Below, piece after piece: positions 1 through 42,900 of a stretch of 64,000 bases of DNA (position 1 is its first letter; every line of letters starts with the position of its first letter). This DNA is from Macrostomum lignano. Lineage: Eukaryota. Under the pieces are notes generated by a model. The model was not told the DNA's origin. It did no database searches and saw nothing but the letters and a program-made list of their open reading frames with translations. The position numbers and the translations under genes were made by a program. The stretch is from assembly GCA_002269645.1 (NCBI GenBank), contig NIVC01000672.1, positions 310,001-374,000 of the forward strand, in the 5' to 3' direction.

Positions 1-109
1 GTGTCAGTGAGTATCAGAAAAATAAATTGAAAAAAAGCTGGCCCATAGCGAAAACGATGATGCAAGATTTATTCTTTCCTTCATCGATGAAAGGGACTCT
101 GCTGCCGCC

Positions 110-3100
110 GTGAGAGAATGCTGCAGTGAAATCAAAGCGCAGCCAAATATTCATATTTCATTTGCGCGGCTCAGTGATCTGCTTAACAATTCAAAGCTGT
201 TCCTTGAATTTCTGCGAGCTGTGGATGCCAAATTCCCTGCCGATTCCGTCCGGACTGCGCTAGAAAGTCAGCGGGACAGCTGGGCGACTGCAGCAATGCT
301 CAAGTTCTATCGGGAATATCCAGAGAGTGACACTTTTACGGAGGACGAGCTCAGATATCTGCTGTCAAATCCTAAGCAAGTGCAGTTGAAAAGATTTATA
401 AAACAACTCAACGGCAAGTTCAGGGCTACTTCCGTCTTGGCTGCGCTAAACCAGTGTCCAAAATGGGCGACTGCTGCTAAAGGAAAACTCCGTCAAAAAT
501 ATCAGAATGCTGATCTTAAAATTGACGAACTTAAAGATCTGCTTTCAGCTTCAGATGAAAATATGTTAGCTAAATTTATAGCACAGATCGATAACAGAGG
601 TATTCCTGCAAAAAATGTTATTGCTGAACTTCGTGAACAGCGGAAGAAACTGATTGAGGACTTACTTGCTGCCACAACAAATTTTCCGCATCAGTTGTGG
701 ACTGAGCTTCAAGGAGTTCTGCATCTGGAGTTAGAGCAGTTCGATGCTGCAAAGGAGAAGTTCGAGCTGCTTGATTCGAAACTGCCGCACAGACGCGAGC
801 TGATTGCCGACTCCATCATGAGCAAGCTGGAGCATCCTGAGACTCAATCTGAAGCCAAACGCGATGGTCTACTCGAGTGTCTCAGGCTGAAGTGCAAAGA
901 TGCTGGCCAGCAAGTTTTGGAGTTTCTTCAGGGCCTGAGGAACGATCCTAAACTTCACCACAGGAATCAGTATGAGCTGGTTGCTCGGCTGCTGAACCTG
1001 CGGAAAAGCTCAACGTCCTTCTTCATCAAGAAAAGGTTGCTGTACAAAAAATTACAGAGTTCAGATGAGGAATTCGATCTAGCGATGCAGGACAGCTACG
1101 AAAAGGCAGTAAATGAAGCGGAAGTTAAATTCCGGGACGTTTGCCAGAAGGTAAAAGAGGAGTTCGATCTGAACCCGTATCCACGTCAAGCACTGCTCTC
1201 GGCCACTCGGAACCATCTCATAGCCGATCGCCAGCAAGAGAAGAAGTTCCTCAAGCAGACACTGGAGAACTCGCACAGGGCCCTGGACCACGCTTGGAAA
1301 AATTTCATTTATTCAGCTAAAAAATGTAGGCTTCCACGATATTTTCCTTTCGCTTACAAAAGAAGACAAGATGCTGATACTGGTGCTTTTATTAAGCCAA
1401 GAGACCAATTAAAACATTATAATCGAAATCCAAGCGAGCTCACAATTGAAAAAGTGACAGAATATTTTGAAAACAATTTTGAATCGACCGTCAATATGGA
1501 CCAGAAATTAATCGACTATTTTGTACGAAGAGAATTTAATATCCTAACAGAAGAGGGAGCGTGGATCATCCAATGGGTCAGTTCAGTGAATGAGGAGAAG
1601 CACAGGCTGCAAGTTAATATTGACGAACTTGAGCGAAGCGTGAACGAATTGCTTACTGCGACTGAAGCTCCGAAGAGTGTCTACGAACTGGCGCACAAAG
1701 CGACCGAGTTCGTTGAAGAGACCCGCCTAGTACTGCACCGGGAAAATGAGAATAGCGATGGAAGAAATCCCAACGGCTCACCAGGCGGAGGCGCTGGCCG
1801 CAGGCGCCGTGGAGGGAGTCACTCCATCCTACGAGGCGAAGACGCTGGCGAAAGTGACCTTGAAGGGAGTCATTTCGACCCACGAGGCGGAGGCGCTGAC
1901 GGCAGAGGCCGTGGAGGGAGTCACTTCGACCCACGAGGCGGAGGCGCTGGTGCCAGAGGGAGTCACTCCGTCCCACGAGGCGGAGGCGCTGGCGGCAGAG
2001 GCCGTGGAGGGAGTCACTTCGACCCACGAGGCGGAGGCGCTGGCGGCAGAGGCCGTGGAGGGAGTCAATTTGACCCACGAGGCGGAGGCGCTGGCGGCAG
2101 AGGCCGTGGAGGGAGTCACTTCGACCCACGAGGCGGAGGCGCTGGCGGCAGAGGCCGTGGAGGGAGTCACTCCGTCCTACAAAGCGTAGGCGCTGGCGGC
2201 AGAGGCCGTGGAGGGAGTCACTTCGACCCACGAGGCGGAGGCGCTGGTGCCAGAGGGAGTCACTCCGTCCCACGAGGCGGAGGCGCTGGCGGCAGAGGCC
2301 GTGGAGGGAGTCAATTTGACCCACGAGGCGGAGGCGCTGGCGGCAGAGGCCGTGGAGGGAGTCACTTTGACCCACGAGGCGGAGGCGCTGGCGGCAGAGG
2401 CCGTGGAGGGAGTCACTCCGTCCTACAAAGCGTAGGCGCTGGCGGCAGAGGCCGTGGAGGGAGTCACTTTGACCCACGAGGCGGAGGCGCTGGCGGCAGA
2501 GGCCGTGGAGGGAGTCAATTTGACCCACGAGGCGGAGGCGCTGGCGGCAGAGGCCGTGGAGGGAGTCAATTCGACCCACGAGGCGGAGGCGCTGGCGGCA
2601 GAGGCCGTGGAGGGAGTCACTCCATCCTACAAAGCGTAGGCGCTGGCGGCAGAGGCCGTGGAGGGAGTCACTCCATCCTACAAAGCGTAGGCGCTGGCGG
2701 CAGAGGCCGTGGAGGGAGTCACTCCGTCCCACGAGGCGGAGGCGCTGGCGCCAGAGGGAGTCACTCCGTCCCACGAGGCGGAGGCGCTGGCGGCAGAGGC
2801 CGTGGAGGGAGTCACTTCGACCCACGAGGCGGAGGCGCTGGCGGCAGAGGCCGTGGAGGGAGTCACTCCATCCTACAAAGCGTAGGCGCTGGCGGCAGAG
2901 GCCGTGGAGGGAGTCACTCCATCCTACAAAGCGTAGGCGCTGGCGGCAGAGGCCGTGGAGGGAGTCACTCCGTCCCACGAGGCAGAGGCGCTGGCGCCAG
3001 AGGGAGTCACTCCGTCCCACGAGGCGGAGGCGCTGGCGGCAGAGGCCGTGGAGGGAGTCACTTCGACCAACGAGGCGGAGGCGCTGGCGGCAGAGGCCGT

Positions 3101-3496
3101 GGAGGGAATCACTCCATCCTACGAGGCGGAGGCGCTGGCGACAGTGGCCGTGGAGGGAGTCACTCCGTCCCACGAGGCGGAGGCGCTGGCGACAGTGGCC
3201 GTGGAGGGAGTCACTCCGTCCCACGAGGCGGAGGCGCTGGCGACAGTGGCCGTGGAGGGAGTCACTCCGTCCCACGAGGCGGAGGCGCTGGCGACAGTGG
3301 CCGTGGAGGGAGTCACTCCGTCCCACGAGGCGGAGGCGCTGGCGACAGTGGCCGTGGAGGGAGTCACTCCGTCCCACGAGGCGGAGGCGCTGGCGACAGT
3401 GGCCGTGGAGGGAGTCACTCCGTCCCACGAGGCGGAGGCGCTGGCGACAGTGGCCGTGGAAGAGAATCCCAACGCCCACATTCCCGGAGGCCGTAA
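110..3496 (+). CDS. Uncharacterised protein, paralog A: 60-aa N-terminal repeats + shared HEPN-like C-terminal module + RGG-rich low-complexity tail
   Basis: 1128-aa ORF. Residues ~194-543 (nt 689-1737) align by eye with the C-terminal half of ORF 12943-15762 (e.g. LENSHRALDHAW/LENSHKAVDHAW, YFPFAYK/YFPFAYK, EGAWIIQWVSSVNEEKH/EGAWIILWVWSVNEEKH, SVYELAH, EETRL). The frame is open from nt 26 and the annotated start is GTG, so the true start may be upstream of the window or spliced. Confidence 0.75.
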   Translation: MRECCSEIKAQPNIHISFARLSDLLNNSKLFLEFLRAVDAKFPADSVRTALESQRDSWATAAMLKFYREYPESDTFTEDELRYLLSNPKQVQLKRFIKQLNGKFRATSVLAALNQCPKWATAAKGKLRQKYQNADLKIDELKDLLSASDENMLAKFIAQIDNRGIPAKNVIAELREQRKKLIEDLLAATTNFPHQLWTELQGVLHLELEQFDAAKEKFELLDSKLPHRRELIADSIMSKLEHPETQSEAKRDGLLECLRLKCKDAGQQVLEFLQGLRNDPKLHHRNQYELVARLLNLRKSSTSFFIKKRLLYKKLQSSDEEFDLAMQDSYEKAVNEAEVKFRDVCQKVKEEFDLNPYPRQALLSATRNHLIADRQQEKKFLKQTLENSHRALDHAWKNFIYSAKKCRLPRYFPFAYKRRQDADTGAFIKPRDQLKHYNRNPSELTIEKVTEYFENNFESTVNMDQKLIDYFVRREFNILTEEGAWIIQWVSSVNEEKHRLQVNIDELERSVNELLTATEAPKSVYELAHKATEFVEETRLVLHRENENSDGRNPNGSPGGGAGRRRRGGSHSILRGEDAGESDLEGSHFDPRGGGADGRGRGGSHFDPRGGGAGARGSHSVPRGGGAGGRGRGGSHFDPRGGGAGGRGRGGSQFDPRGGGAGGRGRGGSHFDPRGGGAGGRGRGGSHSVLQSVGAGGRGRGGSHFDPRGGGAGARGSHSVPRGGGAGGRGRGGSQFDPRGGGAGGRGRGGSHFDPRGGGAGGRGRGGSHSVLQSVGAGGRGRGGSHFDPRGGGAGGRGRGGSQFDPRGGGAGGRGRGGSQFDPRGGGAGGRGRGGSHSILQSVGAGGRGRGGSHSILQSVGAGGRGRGGSHSVPRGGGAGARGSHSVPRGGGAGGRGRGGSHFDPRGGGAGGRGRGGSHSILQSVGAGGRGRGGSHSILQSVGAGGRGRGGSHSVPRGRGAGARGSHSVPRGGGAGGRGRGGSHFDQRGGGAGGRGRGGNHSILRGGGAGDSGRGGSHSVPRGGGAGDSGRGGSHSVPRGGGAGDSGRGGSHSVPRGGGAGDSGRGGSHSVPRGGGAGDSGRGGSHSVPRGGGAGDSGRGGSHSVPRGGGAGDSGRGRESQRPHSRRP
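1785..3460 (+). repeat. Coding minisatellite, 51-nt and 42-nt units (GGRGRGGSHFDPRGGGA / GARGSHSVPRGGGA)
   Basis: Unit ggcggcagaggccgtggagggagtcacttcgacccacgaggcggaggcgct and variants; the unit lengths read are multiples of 3 and the ORF stays open across the array. Confidence 0.95.
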
Positions 3497-4297
3497 TTAT
3501 TTACTCCAAATGCTGAATTCAGTATCTCTCTAATAACTAAAAGAGATGCATGCATATTAAAATCTCTGTTATTCCATATCCCATGGGTCTGATGCTGATT
3601 CCACTGACCCATTCAGCATCTCATGATGAGCTGTAGCTAACCACTTGGATAGAACAAATTGATCCATCAAACCCTAACAAAGGATAACAGATCCCCATCA
3701 GATCGAGCTATCAGTTCGCCCTAAATTGAGAATCCTGAAACCAGTTTTAATTAATCGTAATCGAAGCTCTTACCTGGAACACCCCTTTATATTCTCTGGA
3801 AGTGAACATCTCTGAGATTGCGCACACCAAATACAACGGATTGAAAGCAAACATCTCGTGATTGCGTCATCAGGAAAAGTTATTCGAATCCACCGGCCTT
3901 GGTTATTTGGCTCTCACACTGATAATAGAAGGTGATTCCAGAGCCATAGTAGCGTCGTATAAAAAATCTCTGTAAAAAGAGACTACTGACAGTAGGAATG
4001 CCAATTGCCATTGTTTCCCCTGATATTCGCTATAGAACGGCGAAGCAACGCAGGCACACGAAAGTCAAGAGCGCGGGCTAACTTTTTTGCGCTCATTCTC
4101 AAACAAGAACCAATTGTCGCCAGCCCTCTGGACATCGTTGAAATTCTCCATAATTCTGCCAGAAGGTTGATTTTTTCCATAAGCTCTGTGCAGCCTTGCA
4201 AAGCCTCCCAAACGTACAGAATGTTAAACTAACTGGCACTCACTGGTATCAACAGCGTAAAGTAATAATTAATTATTATGACGGCTACCTATATGTA

Positions 4298-5719
4298 TGA
4301 GGTGTTTTCAAAAAGTAACGAAAATTCTGCTACAAAAACTTTCAGAACAAAAAAATGCAAATTCAGTCAACTGCAGCCTTCAAAGAAATTTGCTGCCACT
4401 TTCAACACATCGCCTTAATCGCTGGTGCCAGCTCCTGAAGCAGCCCTGGGAGACCTCCTTTATGACGCCTCCCAGCACCCCTGTCACAATCTCCTTGATG
4501 GCGCCCAAGGCTTCAAATCTGGATCCTTTGAGACCTGTCACAATCTCCTTGATGGCGCCCAAGGCTTCGAATCTGGATCCTTTGAGACCTGTCACAATCT
4601 CCTTGATGGCGTCCAAGGCTTCGAATCTGGATCCTTTGAGACCTGTCACAATCTCCTTGATGGCGCCCAAGGCTTCGAATCTGGATCCTTTGAGACCTGT
4701 CACAATCTCCTTGATGGCGTCCAAGGCTTCGAATCTGGATCCTTTGAGACCTGTCACAATCTCCTTGATGGCGTCCAAGGCTTCGAATCTGGATCCTTTG
4801 AGACCTGTCACAATCTCCTTGATGGCGTCCAAGGCTTCGAATCTGGATCCTTTGAGACCTGTCACAATCTCCTTGATGGCGTCCAAGGCTTCGAATCTGG
4901 ATCCTTTGAGACCTGTCACAATCTCCTTGATGGCGTCCAAGGCTTCAAATCTGGATCCTTTGAGACCTGTCACAATCTCCTTGATGGCGTCCAAGGCTTC
5001 GAATCTGGATCCTTTGAGACCTGTCACAATCTCCCTGATGGCGTCCAAGGCTTCGAATCTGGATCCTTTGAGACCTGTCACAATCTCCTTGATGGCGTCC
5101 AAGGCTTCGAATCTGGATCCTTTGAAACCTGTCACAATCTCCTTGATGGCGTCCAAGGCTTCGAATCTGGAACCTTTGAGGACCTGGTTCACCTTAAGAA
5201 AGAGTCGGAAATCACACGGCGTCATATCCGGTGAATAAGGTGGGTGGCTCAACTCTGCGACCGTCTTTTGGACCAAAACTGTCTCGATGTCTCGATGTCC
5301 AATCGCAGCTGTTTCTGATCGTCAGTGAGGAACTTCGGCACCGTCTTTGACGCTCTCCCGCCCATCCCGGAATCGCTGGTGCCACTCATGCACAATCGCC
5401 AGAGACGTAGCATCATCTCTATAAGTACTCGTATACACCTCACGAAGCAGCTGGAGGCATTCCGATGGCTTCTTGCTGAGTTTCACCAAAAACTTCGTGT
5501 TTATTAGATGCTGGTTGCTGATTTTGTGGCACAGCGGCGTGACAGCTATAATGAAAAATAATAAAAAATTCTCTCGTATGCAAACCAAAACACTTCGACA
5601 CAATAATGCTTCCTATAAAAACTGAGAAGCCGAGCTTCAAGAGACGTCGATTAATTTTAGTAAAAGCTCAAATTTTAAAATTTAACAGCAACTCTCGTTA
5701 CTTTTTGGCCACACATCGT
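4298..5719 (-). mobile_element. Internally deleted mariner (Tc1/mariner) element with a tandem-amplified transposase segment
   Basis: Minus-strand peptides match mariner transposase: N-terminal HTH (INTKFLVKLSKKPSECLQLLREVY...VHEWHQRFRDGRESV), PKFLTDDQKQLR, and C-terminal HPPYSPDMTPCDFRLF...LKGSRF...CFRSWHQRLRRC. Imperfect TIRs TGAGGTGTTTTCAAAAAGTAACG (from 4298, after TA) and CGTTACTTTTTGGCCACACATCGT (5696-5719). The central catalytic region is absent. Confidence 0.9.
4479..5180. repeat. 54-nt tandem repeat x13 inside the mariner remnant (LKGSRFEALDAIKEIVTG on the minus strand)
   Basis: Unit ttgagacctgtcacaatctccttgatggcgtccaaggcttcgaatctggatcct; 234 aa = 13 x 18 aa in ORF 4380-5276. Confidence 0.95.
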
Positions 5720-6844
5720 CACATGGCTGAAATTACAAGACAGCTCAACTGAATTAAAACGAAAATATGGGAACCAGAATTTGTTTCGAATTTGGCTTCT
5801 GGTAAGAAATGCAGTTGTGCACCCCTTCGTCAGGAGCGCCCGCCTGCAGCCATGCAACCTGTTGGGAAGCTGCGAACCCCCAGGTCAACCAGTCAGAGCT
5901 CCCGTCCCGTCTCCGAATTCCGGAATATTTCCTAGAAATATGATACAGGTTATATACGATTTGAACATTGGATAAGAAGAGTGTTTTAGTTTCCGAACTG
6001 CATAATTTAGTGGATGACTTCTTCGTTTAATTGGATGATTTATGATCTATCAATTTATTACATCTAGACAGGGGCCGTGGGTGTATTAAATTAATTCCTT
6101 CTTAATTGTGCACCCCATCCTTATTTCCATTTTATTGATTCTTTAACAATTTAATTTTATTAGATTATTTTATGAACTGTATATATTCATATTTTCTGCA
6201 TATTCATAACATTTTTACTTTGTCTTTTCATTCCAAAAATGTTTTAATATTTAAATACATTTAATACGTAACTGTTTGTTAAGTAAAACAAAAAGTCGGT
6301 TGCGTGTGATAAGACAATTTATTGAGGAATGACTATTATTGAATATGCTGATCTATGATTGCTATTACAATGTCATTGCGAATAACTGGAACAGTTGTCA
6401 ATTGCATTATTCAGATTGTGATTCACTGATGTTTTCTGTGATTATCCAGGATGTTTAAGAGGATCTGGGAAAATAAAAGATCATTTAAACACATCAGATT
6501 ATCCAATAAAGTCATCTGCTATACTCAAAGGAGAATAAAATAGTCATTGGAGAGTTAAACGATAAAATTATTAGATCAGTAACTTCCAGAGCTGTGTTCC
6601 TGCGCTCAAAGCAATATGCATTTACGGCAGTTTTGGAAGAGTTTTGAGATCAAGGAGGTTGATAAAACTGTACTATTACATCAATAAATTTTGAAACGTA
6701 CGTATGGATTTCAAAGAGACTAAAAGAAGCAATTTAAGCATGATTGTATCTGAAGAAAAATGAAGGTGCGGCCTGGGGTTGCTGGGCCGATGATCAGGAA
6801 GATGAGCGCGCTTTGTGCTGCAGGGAGCTGGTAAACGGACCACC

Positions 6845-7520
6845 TACTTACCTACTTACTACTTATTTACTTACTTACTACTGACGGGGGGCAGAGCGCC
6901 GCGAATAGGCCGCGAGGCCCCTATCGCAACCCCAAGCTAAAAACAGAAAGGCGTTAGCCTGGGGGCTGCACCCTCCTCGCCAGCAGCAAGAGAGCTCGCG
7001 AGAGTGGCGTCCACGATCTTCATCCGTCCAGAGTCCCGAACGAATGCGCGCAGGTCACGGATCCGGTCCGGAGTGGTGAGCTCTTCCAGCCTTAGCGGGT
7101 GACCGAGGTGACGTCTCCGCGCCTCGTTGAAGTGCGGGCAGAAATCTACGTGGTGCGTGGAGGTTTCCTCCTCTAATTCACAGAAGGGACAGATAGTGGA
7201 GCAACCACTCCCCTACCGACGGTCAGGCCACCTGGTCAGGCCTCTTGCTGAGCTCAGGCGGCAGCTTGAGCCCCAGAAGTGGTATTGCTCTGCTACAGTG
7301 AGACCCACCGGGAATTCGGGGATCCTAGGCTTTGGAGATGCGTTCGGAGGCACGGGCGCATGACTTTGCACCTGTTCGTGGAGCTTGCGCGTGGCGCAAT
7401 TGATCTCCCAGGCTGCCCGACTGGTCGACCCAGCCTGGTGGGTAGTTTACGCCGATGGATGGTGGTCTCTGAGGAGGCTGGACCTCGTCTACTAAGCGTG
7501 TGGTGGCGGTGTCAGACCAT
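6845..7520 (-). mobile_element. 3' fragment of a non-LTR retrotransposon (LINE, I/Loa-like C-terminal CCHC zinc finger) with (TAAG)n-like tail
   Basis: Minus strand ~7200-7020 reads [31 protein letters not shown]...[10 protein letters not shown], a typical LINE ORF2 C-terminal zinc knuckle. It is followed by a gtaagtaag-type microsatellite tail (plus strand ctacttacttact, 6843-6882). Upstream sequence is degenerate. Confidence 0.65.
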
Positions 7521-7855
7521 GCAATAGTGAGAGCTTCGCAGTTAGGACCAGCCGAAATTGTCGCCCATGAAATCGCTCACCCCCGGCCAGTCCAAAATTT
7601 TTGCTATCTTTGTGATGCAGCCCAAGCTCTGTGCCACGAAAATTGGGGTTCCAAGGTTCAGGTGGCCCGAGTTTATACTCGTGGAGGACCCACCACTTAA
7701 CCCAGCGGCACAGCTGCCGAGCAAAAATGATGCGACAGTGGATCTCAATTTCAGGAAATTCGACTGAAAGAAACCAATGAACCTGCCGATCAACTATATG
7801 TATGTAGGTAGCGAGAGAGTGTAGGGAGAGAGGGAGTGTAGGGAGGGAGTTGTTG

Positions 7856-8332
<477 letters not shown>

Positions 8333-8955
8333 TAGGGTTTAAATAAAGGGTTTCTCATGGTACGAGTTTCTCGTAGCTGTTGCCGTTTTTCTCCATGTGC
8401 CGAGCCGTGCCATTGTAATTATTATCAAACTGAAACTTTGGCACAGCCAGTGCGCGCACTCAGCAGAGAAGACTCAGCTACGCGACAACAATGATAGAAT
8501 CAAAACAGAATTTTCCTCCCTCATAGTTTTTGCACACACATTATGAGTCTAAAGTACTCTCTTTGTGCCTTATTGAGCACTCAATAGAGATGCAGAACGC
8601 CAGTGTGCAGAGAATTCTGAGCGGTTGCGTCAAGCAGAAAGAGATTAAATAGCTCTGCGCATTCAGAACTGAGCAGTTTGTCAAGCAGCGGCAGGCGAAC
8701 TCAAAGAGCTTCACTTCGGCTGGGTTCCAAGCTGGAATAAGCTGTGCGGCACTGCATGCCAGCACCGGCTCTCGGACGCTAACAGGGACAGCCAGAAGCA
8801 AATTTTTCGAACAAAGATTTTCATCCGCCCAGGCGACGGCCACAGCTGAGCAACTGAGCGCTGCTCTGGATGCCAACGACCGCGAGCAGCTGCTGCGCCT
8901 GTGCAGGCGGGTCGGCAGCAAGCTGACGGTAAAGACTGAGCAGTTTGAGGAATCT

Positions 8956-10161
8956 TTGGCTCATCATCTTGCATGGAAGCCTTACGGACTCGACTGTCTG
9001 AAGGTGCTGGTTGAGAGGCTCGGCCCCTCCTGTCTGACTCAAGCCAGAGACCAGTATGGCAACGCGCCACTGCATTGGGTTGCTTTTTGCCAAGACGAGA
9101 ACTTCATGGAGTTCATCCACAGTCGCATAGGAGCGGAATGCTTCGAGCTGAAAGGCAGGTACAGCAGGTCCATTGCGTTCTTCGCGGCTGAAAACAATCG
9201 CAGCAACTCCATTCTGAAGTGGATTGCCAGAAAGAAAGGACCCGGTTTTCTGACTGCAGTCGATTCGAATGGTAACTCACCTGTGCACAGGGCAGCGGGC
9301 TGTCAGGGCTCAGACTCCATGCAGTTCTTCAAGTCGCTTTTCGGACCCGACTGCTTCTTTCAGAAAGGAGATTTAGGCCGAACTGCTTTTCATTATGCCG
9401 CTATGAATGGAAGCAGCAACTCGGCCCTCAAGTGGCTGGTCAGCGAGTGCGGCTCAGACTGTCTGATGGAGAAAGATGATCAGGGCAGCACTCCTATCCA
9501 CCTGGCTGCACTTGAGCAAGGCGAAGACTCCATGCAGTTCATCAAGGAGCAGCTCGGGTCGCTCGTCTTCATGCTGAAAGGCCTCAACGGAGAGACTTCG
9601 GTCCACATAGCAGCGAGAAACACCTCCAGCAACTCCGCCTTTGCCTGGTGCATCAAGGAGCTGGGCGCCAGGTGTCTGCTGGTTAAAGATTCATATCAAA
9701 GATTGCCCATTCACCTGGCAGCTCGGCATCAGGACGAGAAGTCGATGCAGCTGGCGGTGAGCTCGCTCGGACCGGACTGCCTCAAGATGGCAGCTGAGCA
9801 GCAGAGAACTGCGGTTCACTTCGCAGCCATGAACTCCAGCAGCAGCTCCGCACTGCGGTGGATTGTCGGCCAGCTGGGACCCGACTGCCTGCAGCTGAGG
9901 GACTCCGAGGGCAGCATGGCGCTGCACCTGGCAGCTCAGCACCAGGGCGTGGACTCGCTGAGGCTCATCAAGGAGACGCTGGGCGTCGCCGCCTTCAGGC
10001 TGACGGGTCACCGCGGTCAGACGGTGGCTCACTATGCCGCTGCGAACAGCGAGAAGCAGCAGCTGATGGCGTGGCTCGTCACCGAGGTCGGGCCGCGGTG
10101 CCTTGTGGTGGTCGATGAGCAGGGAAGAATGGCCGCCGATCTGGCTGGCTACTATGAGTAG
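8956..10161 (+). CDS. Ankyrin-repeat protein (~11 repeats, alternating 35/36-aa units)
   Basis: Repeated DxxGxTPxHxAA / GxxGxTAxHxAA motifs throughout. The frame is open from 8653, and an in-frame ATG at 8590 is separated by TAG at 8650-8652, so the 5' end is uncertain (splicing likely). Confidence 0.85.
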   Translation: MAHHLAWKPYGLDCLKVLVERLGPSCLTQARDQYGNAPLHWVAFCQDENFMEFIHSRIGAECFELKGRYSRSIAFFAAENNRSNSILKWIARKKGPGFLTAVDSNGNSPVHRAAGCQGSDSMQFFKSLFGPDCFFQKGDLGRTAFHYAAMNGSSNSALKWLVSECGSDCLMEKDDQGSTPIHLAALEQGEDSMQFIKEQLGSLVFMLKGLNGETSVHIAARNTSSNSAFAWCIKELGARCLLVKDSYQRLPIHLAARHQDEKSMQLAVSSLGPDCLKMAAEQQRTAVHFAAMNSSSSSALRWIVGQLGPDCLQLRDSEGSMALHLAAQHQGVDSLRLIKETLGVAAFRLTGHRGQTVAHYAAANSEKQQLMAWLVTEVGPRCLVVVDEQGRMAADLAGYYE

Positions 10162-10849
10162 GCAGTGGAGTTTTTTGCTTTGAAAGATTTTTCTACTTTT
10201 GATCGCAAGCCACTGAGCGAGCCATTCCTTCAGTGACTGCCTTGCCGTAACCAAATGTTATTCAGAATTGCCCGAATCCCCAAATGATCTTCAATGTAGT
10301 TTTATTCCAGAATCCCGTCTGACTTTGATGAAGAGTTTCATGCCAAATCTGAATCTCATTGGTACTGAAGTTTTTACTGTATCTTACTAACTTCATTAAT
10401 CTTGACAATTTATGGAAATTCATCCACCCCGATTTTTAAACCCAGTTTTAAGCATAACTTTAGCTACTGATGATTGACCACTTCGATTATTGCTTCCTCA
10501 TCATGATAATAATAATGATTTTGACGATATTGATAAGTATTAAAAATGTAATAATTATATATATCCGAATAAAGTTACTAACAATATATTGTTTTTATTT
10601 TAAATATTATTTTCAAAGTTGATAAGGATTATAAATGATTAATTAATAATTGATTTATTAATAATTGTTTATGATCATTTAGTGAATAATATATTAGCGT
10701 TATGTAGGATATAATGTATGATAATATCAGAGTATTAATATGCCTCTTTTAAGCACAGCTAACGAGCACAGGAAGCACAGCTTATTAATAAAATTGTGTG
10801 AGCCCAGATGATTGAGTCCCAGATACGCTTGAGTCTCAGATTTTAGGGT

Positions 10850-11350
10850 CCGAGATCCCCCAGTCCCAGATCCCCCAGTCCAAGATCCCCCAGTCCCAGA
10901 TCCCCCAGTCCCACATCACCCAGTCCCAGATCCCCCAGTCCCACATCCCCCAGTCCCAGATCCCCCAGTCCCACATCCCCCAGTCCCACATCACCCAGTC
11001 CCAGATCCCCCAGTCCCACATCCCCCAGTCCCAGATCCCCCAGTCCCACATCACCCAGTCCCAGATCCCCCAGTCCCACATCCCCCAGTCCCAGATCCCC
11101 CAGTCCCAGCTCCTCCAGTCCCAGATCCCCCAGTCCCAGATCCCCCAGTCCCAGATCCCCCAGTCCCACATCACCCAGTCCCACATCACCCAGTCCCAGA
11201 TCCCCAGTCCCAGATCCCCCAGTCCCAGATCCCCCAGTCCCAGATCCCCCAGTCCCACATCACCCAGTCCCAGATCCCCCAGTCCCAGATTCTCGAGTCC
11301 AAGATCCCTCAGTCCCAGATCCTTGAGTCTGAGATCCTCGAGTCCCAGAT
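10850..11350 (+). repeat. 15-nt minisatellite (cagtcccagatcccc)n
   Basis: Direct reading of the tandem array. Confidence 0.95.
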
Positions 11351-11359
11351 TCTTGAGCC

Positions 11360-33700: not shown

Positions 33701-36700
33701 TCCTATCCTTCAGATCCCTACAAATCCCATCCTTCAGATCTCTACAAATCCCATCCTTCAGATCTCTGCAAATCCCATACTTCAGATCCCTACAAATCCC
33801 ATCCTTCAGATCCCTACAAATCCCATCCTTCAGATCTCTGCAAATCCCATCCTTCAGATCCCTACAAATCCCATCCTTCAGATCCCTACAAATCCCATCC
33901 TTCAGATCTCTGCAAATCCCATACTTCAGATCTCTGCAAATCTCATCCTTCAGATCCCTACAAATCCCATCCTTCAGATCCCTACAAATCCAATCCTTCA
34001 GATCCCTTTAAATCCCATCCTTCAGATCCCTACAAATCCCACACTTCAGCTCCCTACAAATCCCATACTTCAGATCCCTACAAATCCCACACTTCAGATC
34101 TCTGCAAATCCCATCCTTCAGATCCCTACAAATCCCATCCTTCAGATCCCTACAAATCCCATCCTTCAGATCCCTACAAATCCCATCCTTCAGATCTCAG
34201 CAAATCCCATCCTTCAGATCCCTACAAATCCCATCCTTCAGATCCCTACAAATCCCATCCTTCAGATCCCTACAAATCCCATCCTTCAGATCTCAGCAAA
34301 TCCCATCCTTCAGATCCCTACAAATCCCATCCTTCAGATCCCTACAAATCCCATCCTTCAGATCTCAGCAAATCCCATCCTTCAGATCCCTACAAATCCC
34401 ATCCTTCAGATCCCTACAAATCCCATCCTTCAGCTCCCTACAAATCCCATACTTCAGATCCCTACAAATCCCACACTTCAGATCTCTGCAAATCCCATCC
34501 TTCAGATCTCTACAAATCCCATACTTCAGATCCCTACAAATCCCATCCTTCAGATCTCTACAAATCCCATCCTTCAGATCTCTACAAATCCCATACTTCA
34601 GATCCCTACAAATCCCATTCTTCAGATCCCTATAAATCTCATCCTTCAGATCCCTACAAATCCCATCCTTCAGATCCCTACAAATCCCACACTTCAGATC
34701 CCTACAAATCTCATCCTTCAGATCCCTACAAATCCCATCCTTCAGATCTCTGCAAATCCCATCCTTCAGATCTCTGCAAATCCCACACTTCAGATCTCTG
34801 CAAATCCCATCCTTCAGATCCCTACAAATGCCATACTTTAGATCCCTTTAAATCCCATCCTTCAGATCCTACAAATCCCATCCTTCAGATCTCTGCAAAT
34901 CCCATCCTTCAGATCCCTACAAATCCCATCCTTCAGATCTCTGCAAATCCCATACTTCAGATCCCTAGAAATCCCATCTTTCAGATCCCTACAAATCCCA
35001 TCCTTCAGATCTCAGCAAATCCCATCCTTCAGATCCCTACAAATCCCATCCTTCAGATCCCTACAAATCCCACACTTCAGATCCCTACAAATCCCATCCT
35101 TCAGATCCCTACAAATCCCATCCTTCAGATCCCTACAAATCCCACACTTCAGATCCCTACAAATCTCATCCTTCAGATCCCTACAAATCCCATCCTTCAG
35201 ATCCCTACAAATCCCATCCTTCAGATCTCAGCAAATCCCATCCTTCAGATCCCTACAAATCCCATCCTTCAGATCCCTACAAATCCCATCCTTCAGCTCC
35301 CTACAAATCCCATACTTCAGATCCCTACAAATCCCACACTTCAGATCTCTGCAAATCCCATCCTTCAGATCCCTACAAATCCCATACTTCAGATCCCTAC
35401 AAATCCCATCCTTCAGATCTCTACAAATCCCATCCTTCAGATCTCTACAAATCCCATACTTCAGATCCCTACAAATCCCATTCTTCAGATCCCTATAAAT
35501 CTCATCCTTCAGATCCCTACAAATCCCATCCTTCAGATCCCTACAAATCCCATACTTCAGATCTCTACAAATCCCATACTTCAGATCCCTAGAAATCCCA
35601 TCCTTCAGATCCCTACAAATCCCATCCTTCAGATCTCAGCAAATCCCATCCTTCAGATCCCTACAAATCCCATCCTTCAGATCCCTACAAATCCCACACT
35701 TCAGATCCCTACAAATCCCATCCTTCAGATCCCTACAAATCCCATCCTTCAGATCCCTACAAATCCCATCCTTCAGATCCCTACAAATCCATCCTTCAGA
35801 TCCCTACAAATCCCATCCTTCAGATCCCTACAAATCCCATCCTTCAGATCTCACAAATCCCATCCTTCAGATCCCTACAAATCCCATCCTTCAGATCCCT
35901 ACAAATCCCATCCTTCAGATCCCTACAAATCCCATACATCAGATCCCTACAAATCCCATCCTTCAGATCTCTGCAAATCCCATCCTTCAGCTCCCTACAA
36001 ATCCCATACTTCAGATCCCTACAAATCCCATCCTTCAGATCCCTACAAATCCCATCCTTCAGATCCCTACAAATCCCATACTTCAGATCCCTACAAATCC
36101 CATACTTCAGATCCCTATAAATCCATCCTTCAGATCCCTACAAATCCCATCCTTCAGATCCCTACAAATCCCATACTTCAGATCCTACAAATCCCATACT
36201 TCAGATCCCTAGAAATCCCATCTTCAGATCCCTACAAATCCCATACTTCAGATCCCTACAAATCTCATACTTCAGATTCCTACAAATCCCATACTTCAGA
36301 TCCCTTCGAATCCCATACTTCAGATCCCTACAAATCCCATACTTCAGATCCTACAAATCCCATCTTCAGATCCCTTCGAATCCCATACTTCAGATCTCTG
36401 CAAATCCCATACTTCAGATCCCTACAAATCCCATCCTTCAGATCCCTACAAATCCCATACTTCAGATCCCTACAAATCCATACTTCAGATTCCTACAAAT
36501 CCCATACTTCAGATCCCTTCGAATCCCATCTTCAGATCCTACAAATCCCATACTTCAGATCCTACAAATCCCATCCTTCAGATCCCTTCAAATCCCATCC
36601 TTCAGATCTCTGCAAATCCCATACTTCAGATCCCTACAAATCCCATCCTTCAGATCTCTGCAAATCCCATCTTCAGATCCCTACAAATCCCATCCTTCAG

Positions 36701-39690
36701 ATCCCTACAAATCCCATCCTTCAGATCCCTACAAATCCCATCCTTCAGATCCCTACAAATCCCATCCTTCAGATCCCTACAAATCCCATCCTTCAGATCC
36801 CTACAAATCCCATCCTTCAGATCCCTACAAATCCCATCCTTCAGATCCCTACAAATCCCATCCTTCAGATCCCTACAAATCCCATCCTTCAGATCCCTAC
36901 AAATCCCATCTTCAGATCCCTACAAATCCCACCTTCAGATCTCTGCAAATCCCATCCTTCAGATCCCTACAAATCCCATACTTCAGATCCCTACAAATCC
37001 CATCCTTCAGATCTCTACAAATCCCATCCTTCAGATCTCTACAAATCCCATACTTCAGATCCCTACAAATCCCATTCTTCAGATCCCTATAAATCTCATC
37101 CTTCAGATCCCTACAAATCCCATCTTCAGATCCCTACAAATCCCACACTTCAGATCCCTACAAATCTCATCCTTCAGATCCCTACAAATCCCATCCTTCA
37201 GATCTCTGCAAATCCCATCCTTCAGATCTCTGCAAATCCCACACTTCAGATCTCTGCAAATCCCATCCTTCAGATCCCTACAAATGCCATACTTTAGATC
37301 CCTTTAAATCCCATCCTTCAGATCCCTACAAATCCTATCCTTCAGATCCCTACAAATCCCATCCTTCAGATCCCTACAAATCCCATCCTTCAGATCTCTG
37401 CAAATCCCATACTTCAGATCCCTACAAATCCCATCCTTCAGATCCCTACAAATCCCATCCTTCAGATCTCTGCAAATCCCATCCTTCAGATCCCTACAAA
37501 TCCCATCCTTCAGATCCCTACAAATCCCATCCTTCAGATCTCTGCAAATCCCATACTTCAGATCTCTGCAAATCTCATCCTTCAGATCCCTACAAATCCC
37601 ATCCTTCAGATCCCTACAAATCCCATACTTCAGATCTCTACAAATCCCATACTTCAGATCCCTAGAAATCCCATCCTTCAGATCCCTACAAATCCCATAC
37701 TTCAGATCCCTACAAATCTCATACTTCAGATTCCTACAAATCCCATACTTCAGATCCCTTCGAATCCCATACTTCAGATCCCTACAAATCCCATACTTCA
37801 GATTCCTACAAATCCCATACTTCAGATCCCTTCGAATCCCATACTTCAGATCTCTGCAAATCCCATACTTCAGATCCCTAGAAATCCCATCCTTCAGATC
37901 CCTACAAATCCCATACTTCAGATCCCTACAAATCTCATACTTCAGATTCCTACAAATCCCATACTTCAGATCCCTTCGAATCCCATACTTCAGATCCCTA
38001 CAAATCCATACTTCAGATTCCTACAAATCCCATACTTCAGATCCCTTCGAATCCCATCCTTCAGATCTCTGCAAATTCCATACTTCAGATCCCTACAAAT
38101 CCCATCCTTCAGATCTCTGCAAATCCCATACTTCAGATCCCTAGAAATCCCATCCTTCAGATCCCTACAAATCCCATCCTTCAGATCTCAGCAAATCCCA
38201 TCCTTCAGATCCCTACAAATCCCATCCTTCAGATCCCTACAAATCCCATCCTTCAGATCCCTACAAATCCCACACTTCAGATCCCTACAAATCTCATCCT
38301 TCAGATCCCTACAAATCCCATCCTTCAGATCCCTACAAATCCCATCCTTCAGATCTCAGCAAATCCCATCCTTCAGATCCCTACAAATCCCATCCTTCAG
38401 ATCCCTACAAATCCCATCCTTCAGCTCCCTACAAATCCCATACTTCAGATCCCTACAAATCCCACACTTCAGATCTCTGCAAATCCCATCCTTCAGATCC
38501 CTACAAATCCCATACTTCAGATCCCTACAAATCCCATCCTTCAGATCTCTACAAATCCCATCCTTCAGATCTCTACAAATCCCATACTTCAGATCCCTAC
38601 AAATCCCATTCTTCAGATCCCTATAAATCTCATCCTTCAGATCCCTACAAATCCCATCCTTCAGATCCCTACAAATCCCACACTTCAGATCCCTACAAAT
38701 CTCATCCTTCAGATCCCTACAAATCCCATCCTTCAGATCTCTGCAAATCCCATCCTTCAGATCTCTGCAAATCCCACACTTCAGATCTCTGCAAATCCCA
38801 TCCTTCAGATCCCTACAAATGCCATACTTTAGATCCCTTTAAATCCCATCCTTCAGATCCCTACAAATCCTATCCTTCAGATCCCTACAAATCCCATCCT
38901 TCAGATCCCTACAAATCCCATCCTTCAGATCTCTGCAAATCCCATACTTCAGATCCCTACAAATCCCATCCTTCAGATCCCTACAAATCCCATCCTTCAG
39001 ATCTCTGCAAATCCCATCCTTCAGATCCCTACAAATCCCATCCTTCAGATCCCTACAAATCCCATCCTTCAGATCTCTGCAAATCCCATACTTCAGATCT
39101 CTGCAAATCTCATCCTTCAGATCCCTACAAATCCCATCCTTCAGATCCCTACAAATCCCATACTTCAGATCTCTACAAATCCCATACTTCAGATCCCTAG
39201 AAATCCCATCCTTCAGATCCCTACAAATCCCATACTTCAGATCCCTACAAATCTCATACTTCAGATTCCTACAAATCCCATACTTCAGATCCCTTCGAAT
39301 CCCATACTTCAGATCCCTACAAATCCCATACTTCAGATTCCTACAAATCCCATACTTCAGATCCCTTCGAATCCCATACTTCAGATCTCTGCAAATCCCA
39401 TACTTCAGATCCCTAGAAATCCCATCCTTCAGATCCCTACAAATCCCATACTTCAGATCCCTACAAATCTCATACTTCAGATTCCTACAAATCCCATACT
39501 TCAGATCCCTTCGAATCCCATACTTCAGATCCCTACAAATCCCATACTTCAGATTCCTACAAATCCCATACTTCAGATCCCTTCGAATCCCATCCTTCAG
39601 ATCTCTGCAAATTCCATACTTCAGATCCCTACAAATCCCATACTTCAGATCCCTGCAAATCCCATCTATCAGATTTCTTCAGATCCCTTC
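30791..39690 (+). repeat. ~8.9-kb satellite of a 24-nt unit (ttcagatccctacaaatcccatcc)n, roughly 370 copies, with higher-order structure
   Basis: Direct reading; rare variant aatgccatacttt recurs at ~31637, 32501, 33653, 34829, 37285 and 38820. Confidence 0.98.
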
Positions 39691-39952
39691 AACCCCAATG
39701 GGTGCCGCGCCGCAGTCAGGCATGACAAGAAGCTCCAATACTAATTAATGACCGGTGAGACTCGCGTGGAGGTGCGAGTTCGAACGCGCAATATTATAAA
39801 GTACAAGTACGTGCAGCGATTGACTGCTGACTTGATGGCACGCCTTTTTGATGTTTTATTTAATGGAGTAAAGTATTCCGCTTCCGCTGCTCTACCGAGG
39901 TTAATTAAATGAAAGTGCATCGAGTACTTTTCTGCAACTGCAAACCGGCGGC

Positions 39953-42900
39953 TCAGCCGCTGCCGCCAGCGCGGCTGCTGCTGCTCTTCGAGCTTGAAGC
40001 CAGACTGACCACCTGCGGGTTGAAGGGGAGGTGTGGGATCTTATAGATGGGATATGGTGTGGGGATTTTACAGATGAGATATAGAGGTGTGGGATCTTAT
40101 ATAGCTGGGATATAGAGGTTTGGGATCTTATAGATGAGATATAGAGGTGTGGGATCTTATATAGATGGGATATAGAGGTGTGGGATCTTATATAGATAGG
40201 ATATAGAGGTGTGGGATCTTATAGATGAGATATAGAGGTATGGGATCTTATATAGATGGGATATGGGGTGTGGGATGCTATGGATAGGACATTGAGGTGT
40301 GGGATCTTATAGATGAGATATAGAGGTGTAGGATTTTATATAGCTGGGATATGGAGGCGTGGGATCTTATATAGATGGGAGATGGAGGTGTGGGATCTTA
40401 TATAGATGGGACATGGAAGTGTGGGATCTTAAAGATGGGTTATGGAGGTGTGAGATCCTACAGATGGGAGATGGAGTTGTGGGATCTTATAGATGGGACA
40501 TGGAGGTGTGGGATCTTATAGATGGGATATGGTGTGGGATCTTAAAGATTGAATACGTAGGTGTGGGACCTTATAGATGGGATACGGAGGTGTGGGATCT
40601 TATATAAATGGTATATAGAGGTGTAGGATCGTATAGATGGGATACGGAGGTGTGGGATCGTATAGATGGGATACGGAGGTGTGGGATCTTATAGATGGGA
40701 TACGGAGGTGTGGGATCTTATATAGATGGTATAAGGAGGTGTGGGATGCTATGAATAGGATATTGAGGTGTGGAATCTGATCTGAAGCTAATGGGATAAA
40801 GAGGATCTGAGATAAAGAGTAAAACTGGCACAAAAGTCAGCACCAAATCGCATTAAGCCAAGAAAGCGGATTTGGGCACCGCGGCCTGCCCTGCCAGTCC
40901 CCAGGCCACGCAAGCACTGGGTTTCACCTTTGGCCCACACAGCCTTGGGAACGGCGGGGTCGGGAAGGGAAGAGTGGGACGAAGGACCCCCTGCCCCGGG
41001 CAGGCAGGGCAATCGATGCGGGCGGCCCAATTAACTGCAGGGCCCGGCCAACCGTGAGCTGCCGGCCGGTGAACTCGGGCGGAAGCCAGGACGGGGGGGG
41101 CAAAGCCGGGGTTCGAAATTAGCTTCGTTATTTTACGGGGGCCCATGGAGTGCGGGGTTACTACGGCTGCTCAGCCGTTACCGGATTTCATGGCCGCTGA
41201 CTGTACGAAACTCCTTCTGGCTGCTCAGGAGAAAGCGCACTGCTTGACCTTCGGGTTGCTGTGTTTATATAGGGGATTTATAAAGACATCAGATCATGTA
41301 TATGAGCACAGCATAACCATGAGCACAGCATGATCATGAGCACAGCATGACCATGAGCACAGCATGACCATGAGCACAGCATGATCATGAGCACAGCATG
41401 ACCATGAGCATGACCATGAGCACAGCATGACCATGAGCACAGCATGATCATGAGCACAGCATGACCATGAGCACAGCATGACCATGAGCACAGCATGACC
41501 ATGAGCACAGCATGACCATGAGCACACAATGACCATGAGCACAGCATGACTATGAGCACAGCATGACCATGAGCACAGCATGACCATGAGCACAGCATGA
41601 CCATGAGAACACAACAACCATGAGAACACAACAACCATGAGCACAGCATGACCATGAGCACACAATGACCATGAGCACAGCATGACTATGAGCACAGCAT
41701 GACCATGAGCACAGCATGACCATGAGCACAGCATGACCATGAGCACAGCATAACCATAAGCACAGTATGACCATGAGCACAGCATAACCATGAGCACACA
41801 ATGACAATGAGCACAGCATGACCATGAGCACACAATGACCATGAGCACAGCATGACCATGAGCACACAATGACAATGAGCACAGCATGACCATGAGCACA
41901 CAATGACCATGAGCACAGCGTGACCATGAGCACAGCATTACCATGAGCACACAACAACCATGAGCACACAATGACCATGAGCACAGTATGACCAAGAGCA
42001 AACCCTCCCAAGGAAGCCAGCGCCAAGGACTCCGCAGTCCTTACCATCCTGGCCGCCTCGTCCAGGCACTCGCAGACGCTGACGGCGGCGCCGCTCTCCC
42101 TGCGCAGCAGCTGCCTGGCCTCGCTGCCGCGGTTGCCCTGCAGCCGGACCACCACGGGCAGGCCAGGCCGAAGGCGCTGCAGCGCGGAGACGAGGCCCTC
42201 CGCCACGACGTCGCAGCGGACGATGCCGCCGAAGATGTTCACCAGCGCGGCGGTGACGCGGCCGTCCGAGCCGATGATGTCCAGCGCCTGCGCCACCTGC
42301 TTGGCCGTGACGGTGCCGCCGACGTCAAGGAAGTTGGCGGGCTCGCCGCCGTGCAGCTTGACGATGTCCATGGTGGCCATGGCCAGGCCCGCGCCGTTCA
42401 CCAGGCAGCCGATGTCGCCATCCATGCCGACGTACTTCAGGCCGCAGCCGGCCGCCGTAGCGTCGCGCGGGTCCTCCTGGGCCCAGTCGCGGGCGCTGCA
42501 GAGCTCCGGCTGGCGGAAGCGCGCGTTCGAGTCCACGTTGAGCTTGCAGTCCAGGCACAGCACTGCGGGTTTGGAGTGGGGAAATTATCTAGGGGAGATT
42601 TATTGCATAGGGAGATTTTTCCTATAGGAGATTTATCCCTTGGGAGATTTATCCTATGGGGAGATTATTCTATGTTGAGATTTATCCTACATGTATGGGG
42701 AGATTTATCCTATGGGAGATTTATCGTATGGGGAGATTTATCCTAAGGGGAAATTTATCCTATGAGGAGATTTATCTCATGGGGAGATTTATTGCATAGG
42801 GGAGATTTATCATATAAGGAGATTTATCCTATGGGGAGATTGATTCTTTAGGGAGATTTATTCTATAGGAGATTTGTCCCATAAATAGATACATTCCATA

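Follow-up and report, generated by a model that had tools for sequence, protein, structure and literature searches.

Genes A and B, the outer members of a group of three at the beginning of the analysed window (64,000 nucleotides of Macrostomum lignano contig NIVC01000672.1, positions 310,001 to 374,000 of the forward strand), are probably tandem duplicates from a family in which an IFIT-fold TPR region is joined to a novel C-terminal domain, with the ankyrin-repeat gene between them a bystander. A sequence-only reading had earlier taken the three genes for the sensor, adaptor and effector of an antiviral RNA-decay system. The three co-oriented ORFs on which it was built were present on the plus strand of the window (A, 110–3496; ankyrin, 8956–10161; B, 12943–15762), and no intron was needed in any of the coding bodies, as had been claimed. 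Two of the listed starts were wrong: the deposited model for A (PAA78669.1, = P0001, M. lignano) begins at ATG 296 and not at GTG 110, with homology extending further upstream, and the deposited ankyrin CDS begins at 8689 and not at TTG 8956. An exact protein look-up of A translated from its ATG returned no record.

Gene B was an intact plus-strand ORF of 939 codons (12943–15762), consisting of an IFIT-like TPR half (aa 1–512, 12943–14478), the C-terminal module shared with A (aa 513–897, 14479–15633), and a low-complexity (KA)n(EA)n tail (15634–15762). The ORF terminated within an AGGCTG microsatellite (15665–16301). No gene model was deposited for B, and no record was returned by exact protein look-up. 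Two CTGCAG sites located 190–235 nt 5' of the gene were candidate trans-splice acceptors; the frame from a spliced-leader (SL) ATG at the proximal site (12755) hit a stop, and an ATG is present in B itself.

Gene A was cut by the window edge. Its in-window part (26–3496, plus strand, frame open from 26) represented the 3' two-thirds, approximately, of a conceptual protein of ~1721 aa. The window sequence was matched exactly to contig sequence reaching upstream of the window (L003), in which A extended 1.7 kb beyond the edge on the 5' side. An ATG-started ORF of 593 codons was found there (L003 8037–9818), 42% identical to B residues 4–456 (tblastn, E = 1e-98); the 5' part of A outside the window (L003 8037–9740) comprised a CBM20-like domain and an IFIT-like TPR region. 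The upstream ORF overlapped the window ORF, the two frames being one base apart within an A-run at ~27–41, and A consisted of two intact ORFs, one of 593 codons and one of 1157. At the frame-change site (27–41, plus strand, ttgAAAAAAAgctgg), one added A joined the two ORFs, and the A/B homology was unbroken across it (alignment of SEYQKNKLKK / LAHSENDDARFILSFIDER versus SPYKWKHLEAVLKDSEDFNAKFIFALVKSVR). The frame change may be an assembly error in the homopolymer; otherwise it is a genuine frameshift that inactivates A. Homopolymers such as the A7 at 30–36 are typical assembly-error sites. An intron at this junction (GTGAGT at 7–12) was considered and rejected in favour of a one-nucleotide homopolymer difference, because the sole downstream AG that restored the frame (115–116) had no polypyrimidine tract, and because splicing at that AG would delete sequence alignable with B.

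With the frame change bridged, the whole of B could be aligned to A without rearrangement (868 columns, 46% identity). The common C-terminal module claimed for the outer genes was recovered over ~350 aa (A 194–542 versus B 513–895, 47% identity, E = 1e-87). Judged by this alignment, A and B are full-length, old tandem paralogs. Their N-termini had been described as unrelated, and sensor domains as being swapped between them, and neither description stood: the apparently different N-terminus of A was caused by the window-edge cut together with an A-specific insert of ~200 aa (86–685, plus strand; a gap in B in the alignment), and the swap was an artefact of the edge. The insert contained ~2.5 internal repeats of ~55 aa (judged by eye) and had no Pfam match. 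It was followed on the same strand by the shared module (686–1744), all-alpha and with the terminal block REF.IL..EGAW..W...N.EKH...AH.A.EF.EE, and by an RGG/RG-rich tail (1779–3460) made of 33.7 copies of a 51-bp tandem repeat. This repeat accounted for about half of the window ORF of A, and several frames were open in it on both strands. Gene A has acquired the N-terminal CBM20-like domain and the repeat insert in addition to the common architecture.

Relatives were searched for with both B and the module. A word-indexed protein search with B returned nothing, and with a 17-sequence module profile it returned two proteins only, so this type of search was judged too insensitive for the family and an exhaustive HMMER search was needed. 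The latter gave 25 family matches, in M. lignano and in ENA assemblies, so that the family is small; a count of copies and architectures had been proposed as a check. The module was conserved over its whole length of ~370 positions. Invariant columns among 17 members were E, W, W, N, K, H, E and E, with no Arg, in the pattern E...W...W....N..KH...H...E..E with one near-invariant H, and the module ended in a four-helix block. All family-invariant residues were kept in both A and B. In module numbering, the conserved polar residues are E316, N335, K338, H339, H370, E374 and E377. The tails were RGG repeats in A and P0005 (GGSEHFRGRGG in the latter, resembling the tail of A), CCCH zinc fingers in P0002/P0031, and the KA/EA run in B; of the proposed module swapping, it is this variation of tails (RGG, CCCH) that was found, and not an exchange of N-termini between A and B. 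Three to four co-oriented family copies were arrayed in tandem in each of two other loci (L001, L002), and P0027 was coded by a single uninterrupted ORF of 2634 bp.

The AlphaFold model of the C-terminal module was all-alpha (pLDDT 86, pTM 0.87). A fold search with it against the PDB gave no match at E ≤ 0.001, the best being generic TPR/solenoid structures (TM ≤ 0.2), and no significant match was obtained against viral folds. The module sequence and profile had no match among PDB sequences, and no Pfam family was shared by the 17 members at E ≤ 1. The idea that the module arose by divergence from a copy of the TPR half was rejected (hhalign probability 0.8%). In the literature searched, neither these gene ids nor IFIT-like proteins of invertebrates were the subject of any paper; where "IFIT" was matched in mollusc papers, IFITM was meant. 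On the profile and model comparisons, the module is a novel domain without known relative in a lineage-restricted flatworm family, and the family would bring a new conserved domain of ~370 aa that is described in no database.

The earlier description of B as IFIT-like agreed with the fold of its TPR half, and A was alike in this respect, the link by sequence being fragile. Vertebrate IFIT5, IFIT1 and IFIT2 made up 11 of the 14 best PDB fold matches of the AlphaFold model of B 1–512 (pLDDT 71.5, pTM 0.66), with TM values of 0.53/0.57 for IFIT5 (4hot, E = 4.7e-5), 0.51–0.59 for IFIT1 (5w5h/5w5i), and 0.48/0.55 for IFIT2 (4g1t, rank 14). Non-IFIT TPR proteins in the top 20 had TM values of 0.17–0.40, and BBS4 (6vbu), ranked lower, had 0.41/0.52. 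The predicted multi-TPR clamp of B was superposed on IFIT1 and IFIT5 over the full length (TM up to 0.59). TPR solenoids can converge in shape. At the sequence level, a 7-sequence profile (A2) had IFIT1 (4hou) as its sole significant match in the PDB (E = 1.5e-4), in register from the N-terminus (LECHFTW in the family, LRCHFTW in IFIT1). The match was lost with a broader 11-sequence profile (A4), and IFIT was not reached with single family sequences as queries. The N-terminal signature was LECHFTW in P0005 and P0027 and ECHFKW in P0009 and P0023, and was degenerate in the window genes (MESHFQRLP in B, MERHFKRLP in A). As modelled, the N-terminal half of A and B looks like an IFIT-like TPR region.

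The family resembles the vertebrate IFITs in having an all-TPR clamp of ~470–510 aa for which they are the best full-length fold matches (TM 0.48–0.59), the LxCHFTW signature in several flatworm members in register with IFIT1, an essentially single coding exon, and tandem arrays with gain and loss of copies. It differs in sequence, with ~12% identity and no robust detection by profiles, and in that the IFITs have neither the ~370-aa C-terminal domain nor the RGG/CCCH tails. The IFITs are vertebrate proteins, whereas flatworms have, to our knowledge, no interferon system, and RNA binding and inducibility of the family would be matters of analogy. In a published survey, IFITs were found only in jawed vertebrates and were described as an invention of that group that arose together with interferon (PMC3688568).

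The proteins could also be non-immune scaffolds of RNA granules or the germline, built of a TPR solenoid and RGG/CCCH tails and resembling IFITs merely as one long TPR clamp resembles another; we consider this possible but doubtful. The fragile sequence link to IFIT would fit such scaffolds, as would the tails, because those of the RGG and CCCH types characterise RNP-granule proteins generally, and the locus bears no immune marks, its neighbours being housekeeping genes, a CBM20 gene and a RIO1 kinase. The fold search speaks against them, as IFITs specifically were the best full-length matches ahead of many other TPR proteins; so does the LxCHFTW signature, placed as in IFIT1, and the tandem arrays, copy loss and pseudogenes fit a fast-turnover family.

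Under the favoured reading of an IFIT-fold region joined to a novel domain, the TPR clamp would bind single-stranded RNA, possibly 5' ends, by analogy with IFIT1 and IFIT5, while the RGG or CCCH tails would increase the affinity for RNA or direct the protein to condensates. One possible role of the conserved C-terminal domain would be multimerisation; the other would be an activity of its own, for which its polar invariants could form a metal or substrate site. Members of the family would then bind RNA in cell-intrinsic restriction or regulation and evolve by tandem duplication and loss; from the IFIT analogy we infer both the RNA binding and any antiviral role. A stronger version, which we consider unlikely, is that these are genuine protostome IFIT homologues with a C-terminal effector, forming a new family of RNA-directed cell-intrinsic defence. 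The clamp would in that case predate vertebrates and interferon, the C-terminal domain (invariant E/N/K/H/H/E/E) would supply an enzymatic or signalling effector, and diversification would come from tandem duplication and from the exchange of tails (RGG, CCCH, CBM20). If true, IFIT would join Mx and other antiviral effectors now known to be much older than interferon. If the resemblance is convergent, the family would still be an uncharacterised, lineage-restricted class of putative RNA-binding proteins. Its function could be tested directly, as M. lignano is a transgenic, RNAi-tractable model.

The shared module had also been called HEPN-like, and nothing of this kind was detectable in sequence or fold. 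No R.{3,7}H of A was aligned with one of B, Rx4-6H was not conserved in the invariant columns of the 17 module members, and no HEPN/KEN or related Pfam family was found in A, B, or the 17 module sequences at E ≤ 1. HEPN, RNase L, Ire1 and Cas13 structures were absent from the fold matches of the whole-module model, and the PADLOC defence scan returned nothing. The likeness to HEPN RNases (RNase L/Ire1 KEN, Cas13) was limited to a helical module ending in a short His-containing helical bundle, whereas the conserved Rx4-6H was lacking; nothing supports a HEPN RNase identity of the module. RNase L differs further, as ankyrin repeats and the flatworm module were never on one polypeptide and were not recurrently linked.

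The middle gene (deposited CDS of 490 aa, 8689–10161, plus strand; frame open from 8653) was ankyrin-only, as first described (Ank_2, E = 4.3e-29, four matched stretches). Its CDS begins directly after a CAG acceptor, in frame, and the first ATG of its own is at 9106; an M. lignano spliced leader ending in ATG could be the source of the start codon. Its M. lignano relatives fell into at least 15 ankyrin clusters, many of them with a fused kinase, and the closest were M. lignano ankyrin + Pkinase proteins (P0039, P0042–P0048; 39–53% identity). Fish ANKK1 was among the distant matches. The gene recalls ANKK1/RIPK4-like proteins in that its closest relatives join the same ankyrin domain to a Pkinase, but in the flatworm paralogs the ankyrin part is N-terminal and the kinase C-terminal, and the window gene ends after the ankyrin repeats. 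A kinase exon of this gene was considered and rejected, as no kinase or kinase remnant was found anywhere in the window.

Recurrent linkage of the ankyrin gene with the family, proposed as a further check, was not found. Four other family loci (L001, L002, L004, L005) had no ankyrin relatives within ±10 kb, and no family genes lay near two ankyrin paralogs (L007, L008), for which reason the ankyrin gene was regarded as a bystander; apart from the window, a pairing with B occurred only in the locus's second copy. The gene belongs to a large ankyrin(-kinase) expansion that is specific to M. lignano and separate from the A/B family; it looks like a neighbour and not a partner, and would lie between A and B by chance of genome arrangement. 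In the SL-resolved operons of M. lignano, genes are co-oriented, the downstream gene is trans-spliced, and the repeat-adjusted spacing is <1 kb (PMC8629364). The genes studied here were co-oriented and the ankyrin CDS followed a CAG, but the intergenic spacing was 5192 bp between A and the ankyrin gene and 2781 bp between the ankyrin gene and B (~3.4 and ~1.4 kb minus detectable repeats), in both cases >1 kb. The ankyrin gene and B may nevertheless be co-transcribed, the adjusted ~1.4 kb being not far above the threshold.

Taken together, these results make it very improbable that the genes form a sensor/adaptor/effector trio for antiviral RNA decay, with the module as a HEPN-type RNase and the ankyrin gene coupled to it as in RNase L. 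The three genes are adjacent and co-oriented, the adjacency of the ankyrin gene and B is kept in the second locus copy, the ankyrin CDS looks trans-spliced in a species that has operons, the front half has the IFIT fold, and the tails are of RNA-binding types. Set against this are the unconserved Rx4-6H, the absence of HEPN/KEN Pfam and fold matches, and intergenic distances (5.2 and 2.8 kb) above the operon criterion even after repeat subtraction. The second locus copy is without A and, being an allele or homeolog, does not count as an independent case. The lack of recurrent linkage largely refutes the partnership, and the three-gene HEPN system as formulated is not worth pursuing.

Gene A lies in a segment of ~11 kb bracketed by direct repeats of ~385 bp (downstream copy 3568–3952, 87.7% identical to L003 2241–2623). 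The second locus copy had a single such repeat and no gene A, and its B (B') carried an 820-bp insertion and a stop codon; the three genes were accordingly not conserved as a unit. The dN/dS of B versus B' was ~0.69, based on only 21 changes, a number that includes changes acquired by B' as a pseudogene. With A missing, B' broken and this ratio, constraint at the locus may be relaxed. It is nonetheless quite unlikely that the window genes are decaying, functionless duplicates, the frameshift having inactivated A and B being a relic that is not transcribed, in a genome that is rich in repeats and was recently duplicated. The frame change in A, the lack of a gene model or protein record for B, the state of the second copy, and the transposon remnant and minisatellites between the genes would all suit decay. 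However, the ORFs of both A and B are intact and preserve all family-invariant residues, the sole frame change lies within an A7 homopolymer, a deposited model exists for A, and the ratio comes from few substitutions, part of them in B'.

A transposon enclosing the cluster was considered and rejected, as no TE ORFs were found flanking the three genes. The Rfam scan of the window returned nothing, and no spliced-leader gene was found in it. Between A and the ankyrin gene there was only a degenerate mariner-type transposase remnant (4380–5603, minus strand), consisting of an HTH_48 piece (5322–5603) and a C-terminal 'HPPYSPDMTPCDF' piece. The last codons of this remnant were amplified into a 54-bp minisatellite (4480–5186).

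The three co-oriented plus-strand ORFs (A, the ankyrin gene and B, in that order) proved to be real. The window is eukaryotic and minisatellite-rich, with spliced, GC-rich genes on the minus strand further downstream, and an Rfam scan of it gave no match. Contig DNA including the region upstream (NIVC01000672.1, GCA_002269645.1; hereafter L003) was fetched and matched the window base for base, window position 1 being L003 9706. The C-terminal module common to A and B was confirmed (A 194-542 vs B 513-895, approximately 350 aa, 47% identity, E = 1e-87), and no module copies beyond A and B were found in the window. The protein encoded by the middle ORF has a strong match to ankyrin repeats (Ank_2, E = 4e-29). 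The listed ORF starts of A and the ankyrin gene were artefacts: the frame is open from 26 with the first ATG at 296 in A, and from 8653 with the first ATG at 9106 in the ankyrin gene. The sequence-only observation was partly confirmed. Of its interpretation, the IFIT-like character stood; the HEPN assignment, the swapping of domains and the role of the ankyrin gene as a partner did not.

The main correction is that gene A is truncated by the window edge. When B was compared by tblastn with the 10 kb that precede the window, L003 8421-9722 was 42% identical to B residues 4-456 (E = 1e-98). This B-like region is contained in an ATG-started 593-codon ORF (L003 8037-9818), which overlaps the window ORF of A in a frame differing by one base. 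The frame switch sits within the run ttgAAAAAAAgctgg (window 27-41), across which A reads SEYQKNKLKK followed by LAHSENDDARFILSFIDER; the B counterpart is SPYKWKHLEAVLKDSEDFNAKFIFALVKSVR. This shift could be a genuine mutation, or it could stem from an assembly error in the homopolymer. The conceptual A protein (1721 aa) is collinear with all of B (46% identity, 868 columns), and its additions relative to B therefore number three. First comes a domain of 128 aa at the N-terminus (L003 8037-8420, immediately 5' of the window), whose CBM_20 match is weak and below the Pfam cut-off (E = 8.7e-4); this domain may have been captured from a neighbouring gene. The second is an insert of approximately 200 aa consisting of internal repeats (window ~86-685); A and B had been said to have unrelated N-termini, and this insert was what had been taken for that of A. 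The third is an RGG-rich tail derived from a 51-bp tandem repeat that makes up about half of the A ORF. The deposited A model (PAA78669.1, hypothetical protein BOX15_Mlig019237g1, M. lignano; cluster P0001, obtained when proteins were searched exhaustively with the A/B module, and named by cluster look-up) uses the next ATG (296) as its start and has part of the repeat removed as an intron.

A word-indexed protein search with B gave no match, and an exhaustive HMMER search yielded a family of 25 proteins from M. lignano (Mlig006963, Mlig030191, Mlig020377, and two UniRef entries) and ENA assemblies. Full-length members could be aligned to B end to end, the module was conserved over its whole length of approximately 370 positions, and several members began with LECHFTW or ECHFKW. 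The protein ends vary: P0005 terminates in a GGSEHFRGRGG repeat closely resembling the tail of A, and P0002 and P0031 carry CCCH zinc fingers C-terminal to the module. Across 17 module sequences, E316, W326, W330, N335, K338, H339, E374, and E377 were invariant and H370 near-invariant; the invariant positions all fall within the last ~65 residues (E...AW...W....N..KH.......AH.AAEFAE).

The module had been read as HEPN-like, the effector of a three-part system with an ankyrin partner. No R-x(3-7)-H was present at a common column in A and B, and no Arg was invariant in the 17 sequences. Pfam searches gave no HEPN or IFIT-specific match for A and B, with weak TPR matches in B only; for A, B, and eight relatives, and then for all 17 module sequences, no HEPN/KEN-type family and no common family was matched. 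PADLOC gave no match, nor did module profiles built from 2 and from 17 sequences when run against PDB sequences. The AlphaFold model of the B module was confident (pLDDT 86.3, pTM 0.87, 16 helices). It had no Foldseek match in PDB at E ≤ 0.001, the best matches being generic TPR/solenoid proteins (E ≥ 0.06, TM ≤ 0.2), and no match in a viral fold library. Derivation of the module as a copy of the TPR half, the IFIT-like N-terminal part, was rejected (hhalign probability 0.8%). As far as the libraries searched go (Pfam, PDB sequence and fold, viral), the module is an undescribed domain.

The IFIT-like front half was upheld at the fold level. IFIT5, IFIT1, and IFIT2 accounted for 11 of the 14 best PDB matches of the AlphaFold model of B 1-512 (pLDDT 71.5, pTM 0.66), led by 4hot (E = 4.7e-5, TM 0.53/0.57) and 5w5h (TM 0.53/0.59). 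Among the top 20, TPR proteins other than IFITs reached TM 0.17-0.40 only; the best further down the list was BBS4 (6vbu, TM 0.41/0.52). Single family sequences gave no match to IFIT. The sole significant PDB sequence match of a 7-sequence family profile was the IFIT1 N-terminal fragment 4hou (E = 1.5e-4), aligned in register from the N-terminal signature onward; with an 11-sequence profile this match was lost, and the N-terminal signatures of A and B are degenerate. Since the sequence-level link is fragile, the family is called IFIT-fold on the predicted structure and is a possible rather than an established homologue of IFIT. According to a published survey, IFIT genes occur in jawed vertebrates only, the TPR candidates it had from invertebrates having been rejected (PMC3688568). 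No account of invertebrate IFIT-like proteins or of these gene ids was found in the literature searched.

Most likely, A and B arose by an old tandem duplication within a lineage-restricted family, whose members combine a TPR clamp of the IFIT fold with a novel helical domain, conserved in the family, and with variable putative RNA-binding tails. By comparison with IFIT1/IFIT5 and from the RGG/CCCH tails, the proteins would bind RNA, and the C-terminal domain would multimerise them or have another activity; a non-immune RNP-scaffold role is a rival reading of the same family. Tandem arrays of 3-4 family genes each were found at two loci (L001 and L002) in another species. Such arrays, along with lost copies and pseudogenes, are in keeping with a family of fast turnover, which is compatible with defence without proving it. 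Both array loci come from ENA assembly ERZ25074608, an AT-richer eukaryote (38% GC), and one adjoins an integrase (rve) fragment.

Recurrent linkage with the ankyrin family was absent at the loci examined. No ankyrin relative lay within ±10 kb of the M. lignano family paralogs P0005 (L004) and P0027 (L005) or of the two arrays, and no family gene was near the ankyrin paralogs at L007 (~29 kb upstream, same contig) and L008. The sole other pairing of the ankyrin gene with B was at L006 (NIVC01001049.1). L006 and the window are collinear over a stretch that runs from the upstream CBM20 gene past B, so L006 is a second, allelic or homeologous, copy of the locus, not independent evidence of linkage. 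Judged by this copy, the trio is not conserved: gene A is missing, and the ~385-bp direct repeats (87.7% identity, one at window 3568-3952) that bracket the ~11-kb A segment are represented there by a single copy. The ankyrin gene is most likely a neighbour from an unrelated expansion, and the three-part HEPN system is the least likely explanation.

The B copy in L006 (B') is 98% identical to B and carries an 820-bp insertion (L006 12872-13691) with 8-bp near-duplication flanks (TCGGCTAT/TCGGCAAT), as well as a 12-bp insertion; its codon 107 is a stop. A further rival explanation is that this particular locus is decaying. Between B and B' there are 6 synonymous and 15 non-synonymous differences (dN/dS ~0.69, from very few events). 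The 820-bp insertion may be a non-autonomous transposon; it showed no terminal inverted repeats and had no second copy in the DNA fetched.

Intronless genes with CBM20-like domains were observed on the same contig, 9-10 kb upstream, and at the equivalent position of L006 (L007 18549-20138; L006 1611-4307), that of L006 encoding 898 aa (CBM_20, E = 1.4e-7). A satellite of approximately 2 kb with a 33-bp period (L003 1-2057, L007 20150-21368, L006 4363-4772) separates the CBM20 gene from the gene A segment and yields plus-strand open frames of 670-720 codons.

The deposited ankyrin CDS (window 8689-10161, plus strand, 490 aa) begins directly 3' of ...gtcaagCAG, in frame and without its own ATG. 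The M. lignano spliced leader has an ATG at its end and ~30% of genes are trans-spliced (PMC8629364), so a leader-donated start codon is a reasonable inference. Ankyrin relatives formed at least 15 M. lignano clusters (39-89% identity), many with a protein kinase domain that follows the repeats on the C-terminal side; matches from other organisms were limited to generic ankyrin proteins (≤ 29% identity). The window holds no kinase remnant. A sizeable M. lignano expansion combines N-terminal ankyrin repeats with a C-terminal protein kinase (P0039, P0042-P0048), and the window's gene is a kinase-less member of it.

The A-to-ankyrin spacing is 5192 bp and the ankyrin-to-B spacing 2781 bp (~3.4 and ~1.4 kb, respectively, after removal of detectable repeats). 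Both exceed the repeat-adjusted M. lignano operon threshold of 1 kb; the ankyrin gene and B may still be co-transcribed as an operon. A transposon around the cluster was rejected, as none encloses A, the ankyrin gene, and B. A degenerate mariner-type transposase remnant (window 4380-5603, minus strand; HTH_48 E = 2.3e-4, C-terminal HPPYSPD motif) lies between A and the ankyrin gene, and its last coding stretch (GSRFEALDAIKEIVTG) was amplified into a 54-bp minisatellite (13 copies, 98% identity).

Further downstream, two stretches (window 19850-20966 and 22592-23708) form a direct duplication, the period of which is ~2.74 kb; both copies are matched by one L006 stretch (95.6%). The ORFs at 20208-21188 and 22950-23930 are repeat-derived (326 codons each, one residue different, 2742 bp apart). 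Over approximately 10 kb at window ~30000-40000 the two strands are extremely asymmetric in composition (GC skew −0.54 to −0.77); this part is probably a long C-rich satellite, intronic or intergenic. GC-rich exons of spliced minus-strand genes at window ~41500-44100 and ~48500-55700 resembled, by eye, a succinyl-CoA ligase beta-subunit-like protein and a cysteine-rich GLG1/ESL-1-like repeat protein; the introns of these two genes are filled with minisatellites that produce long spurious ORFs.
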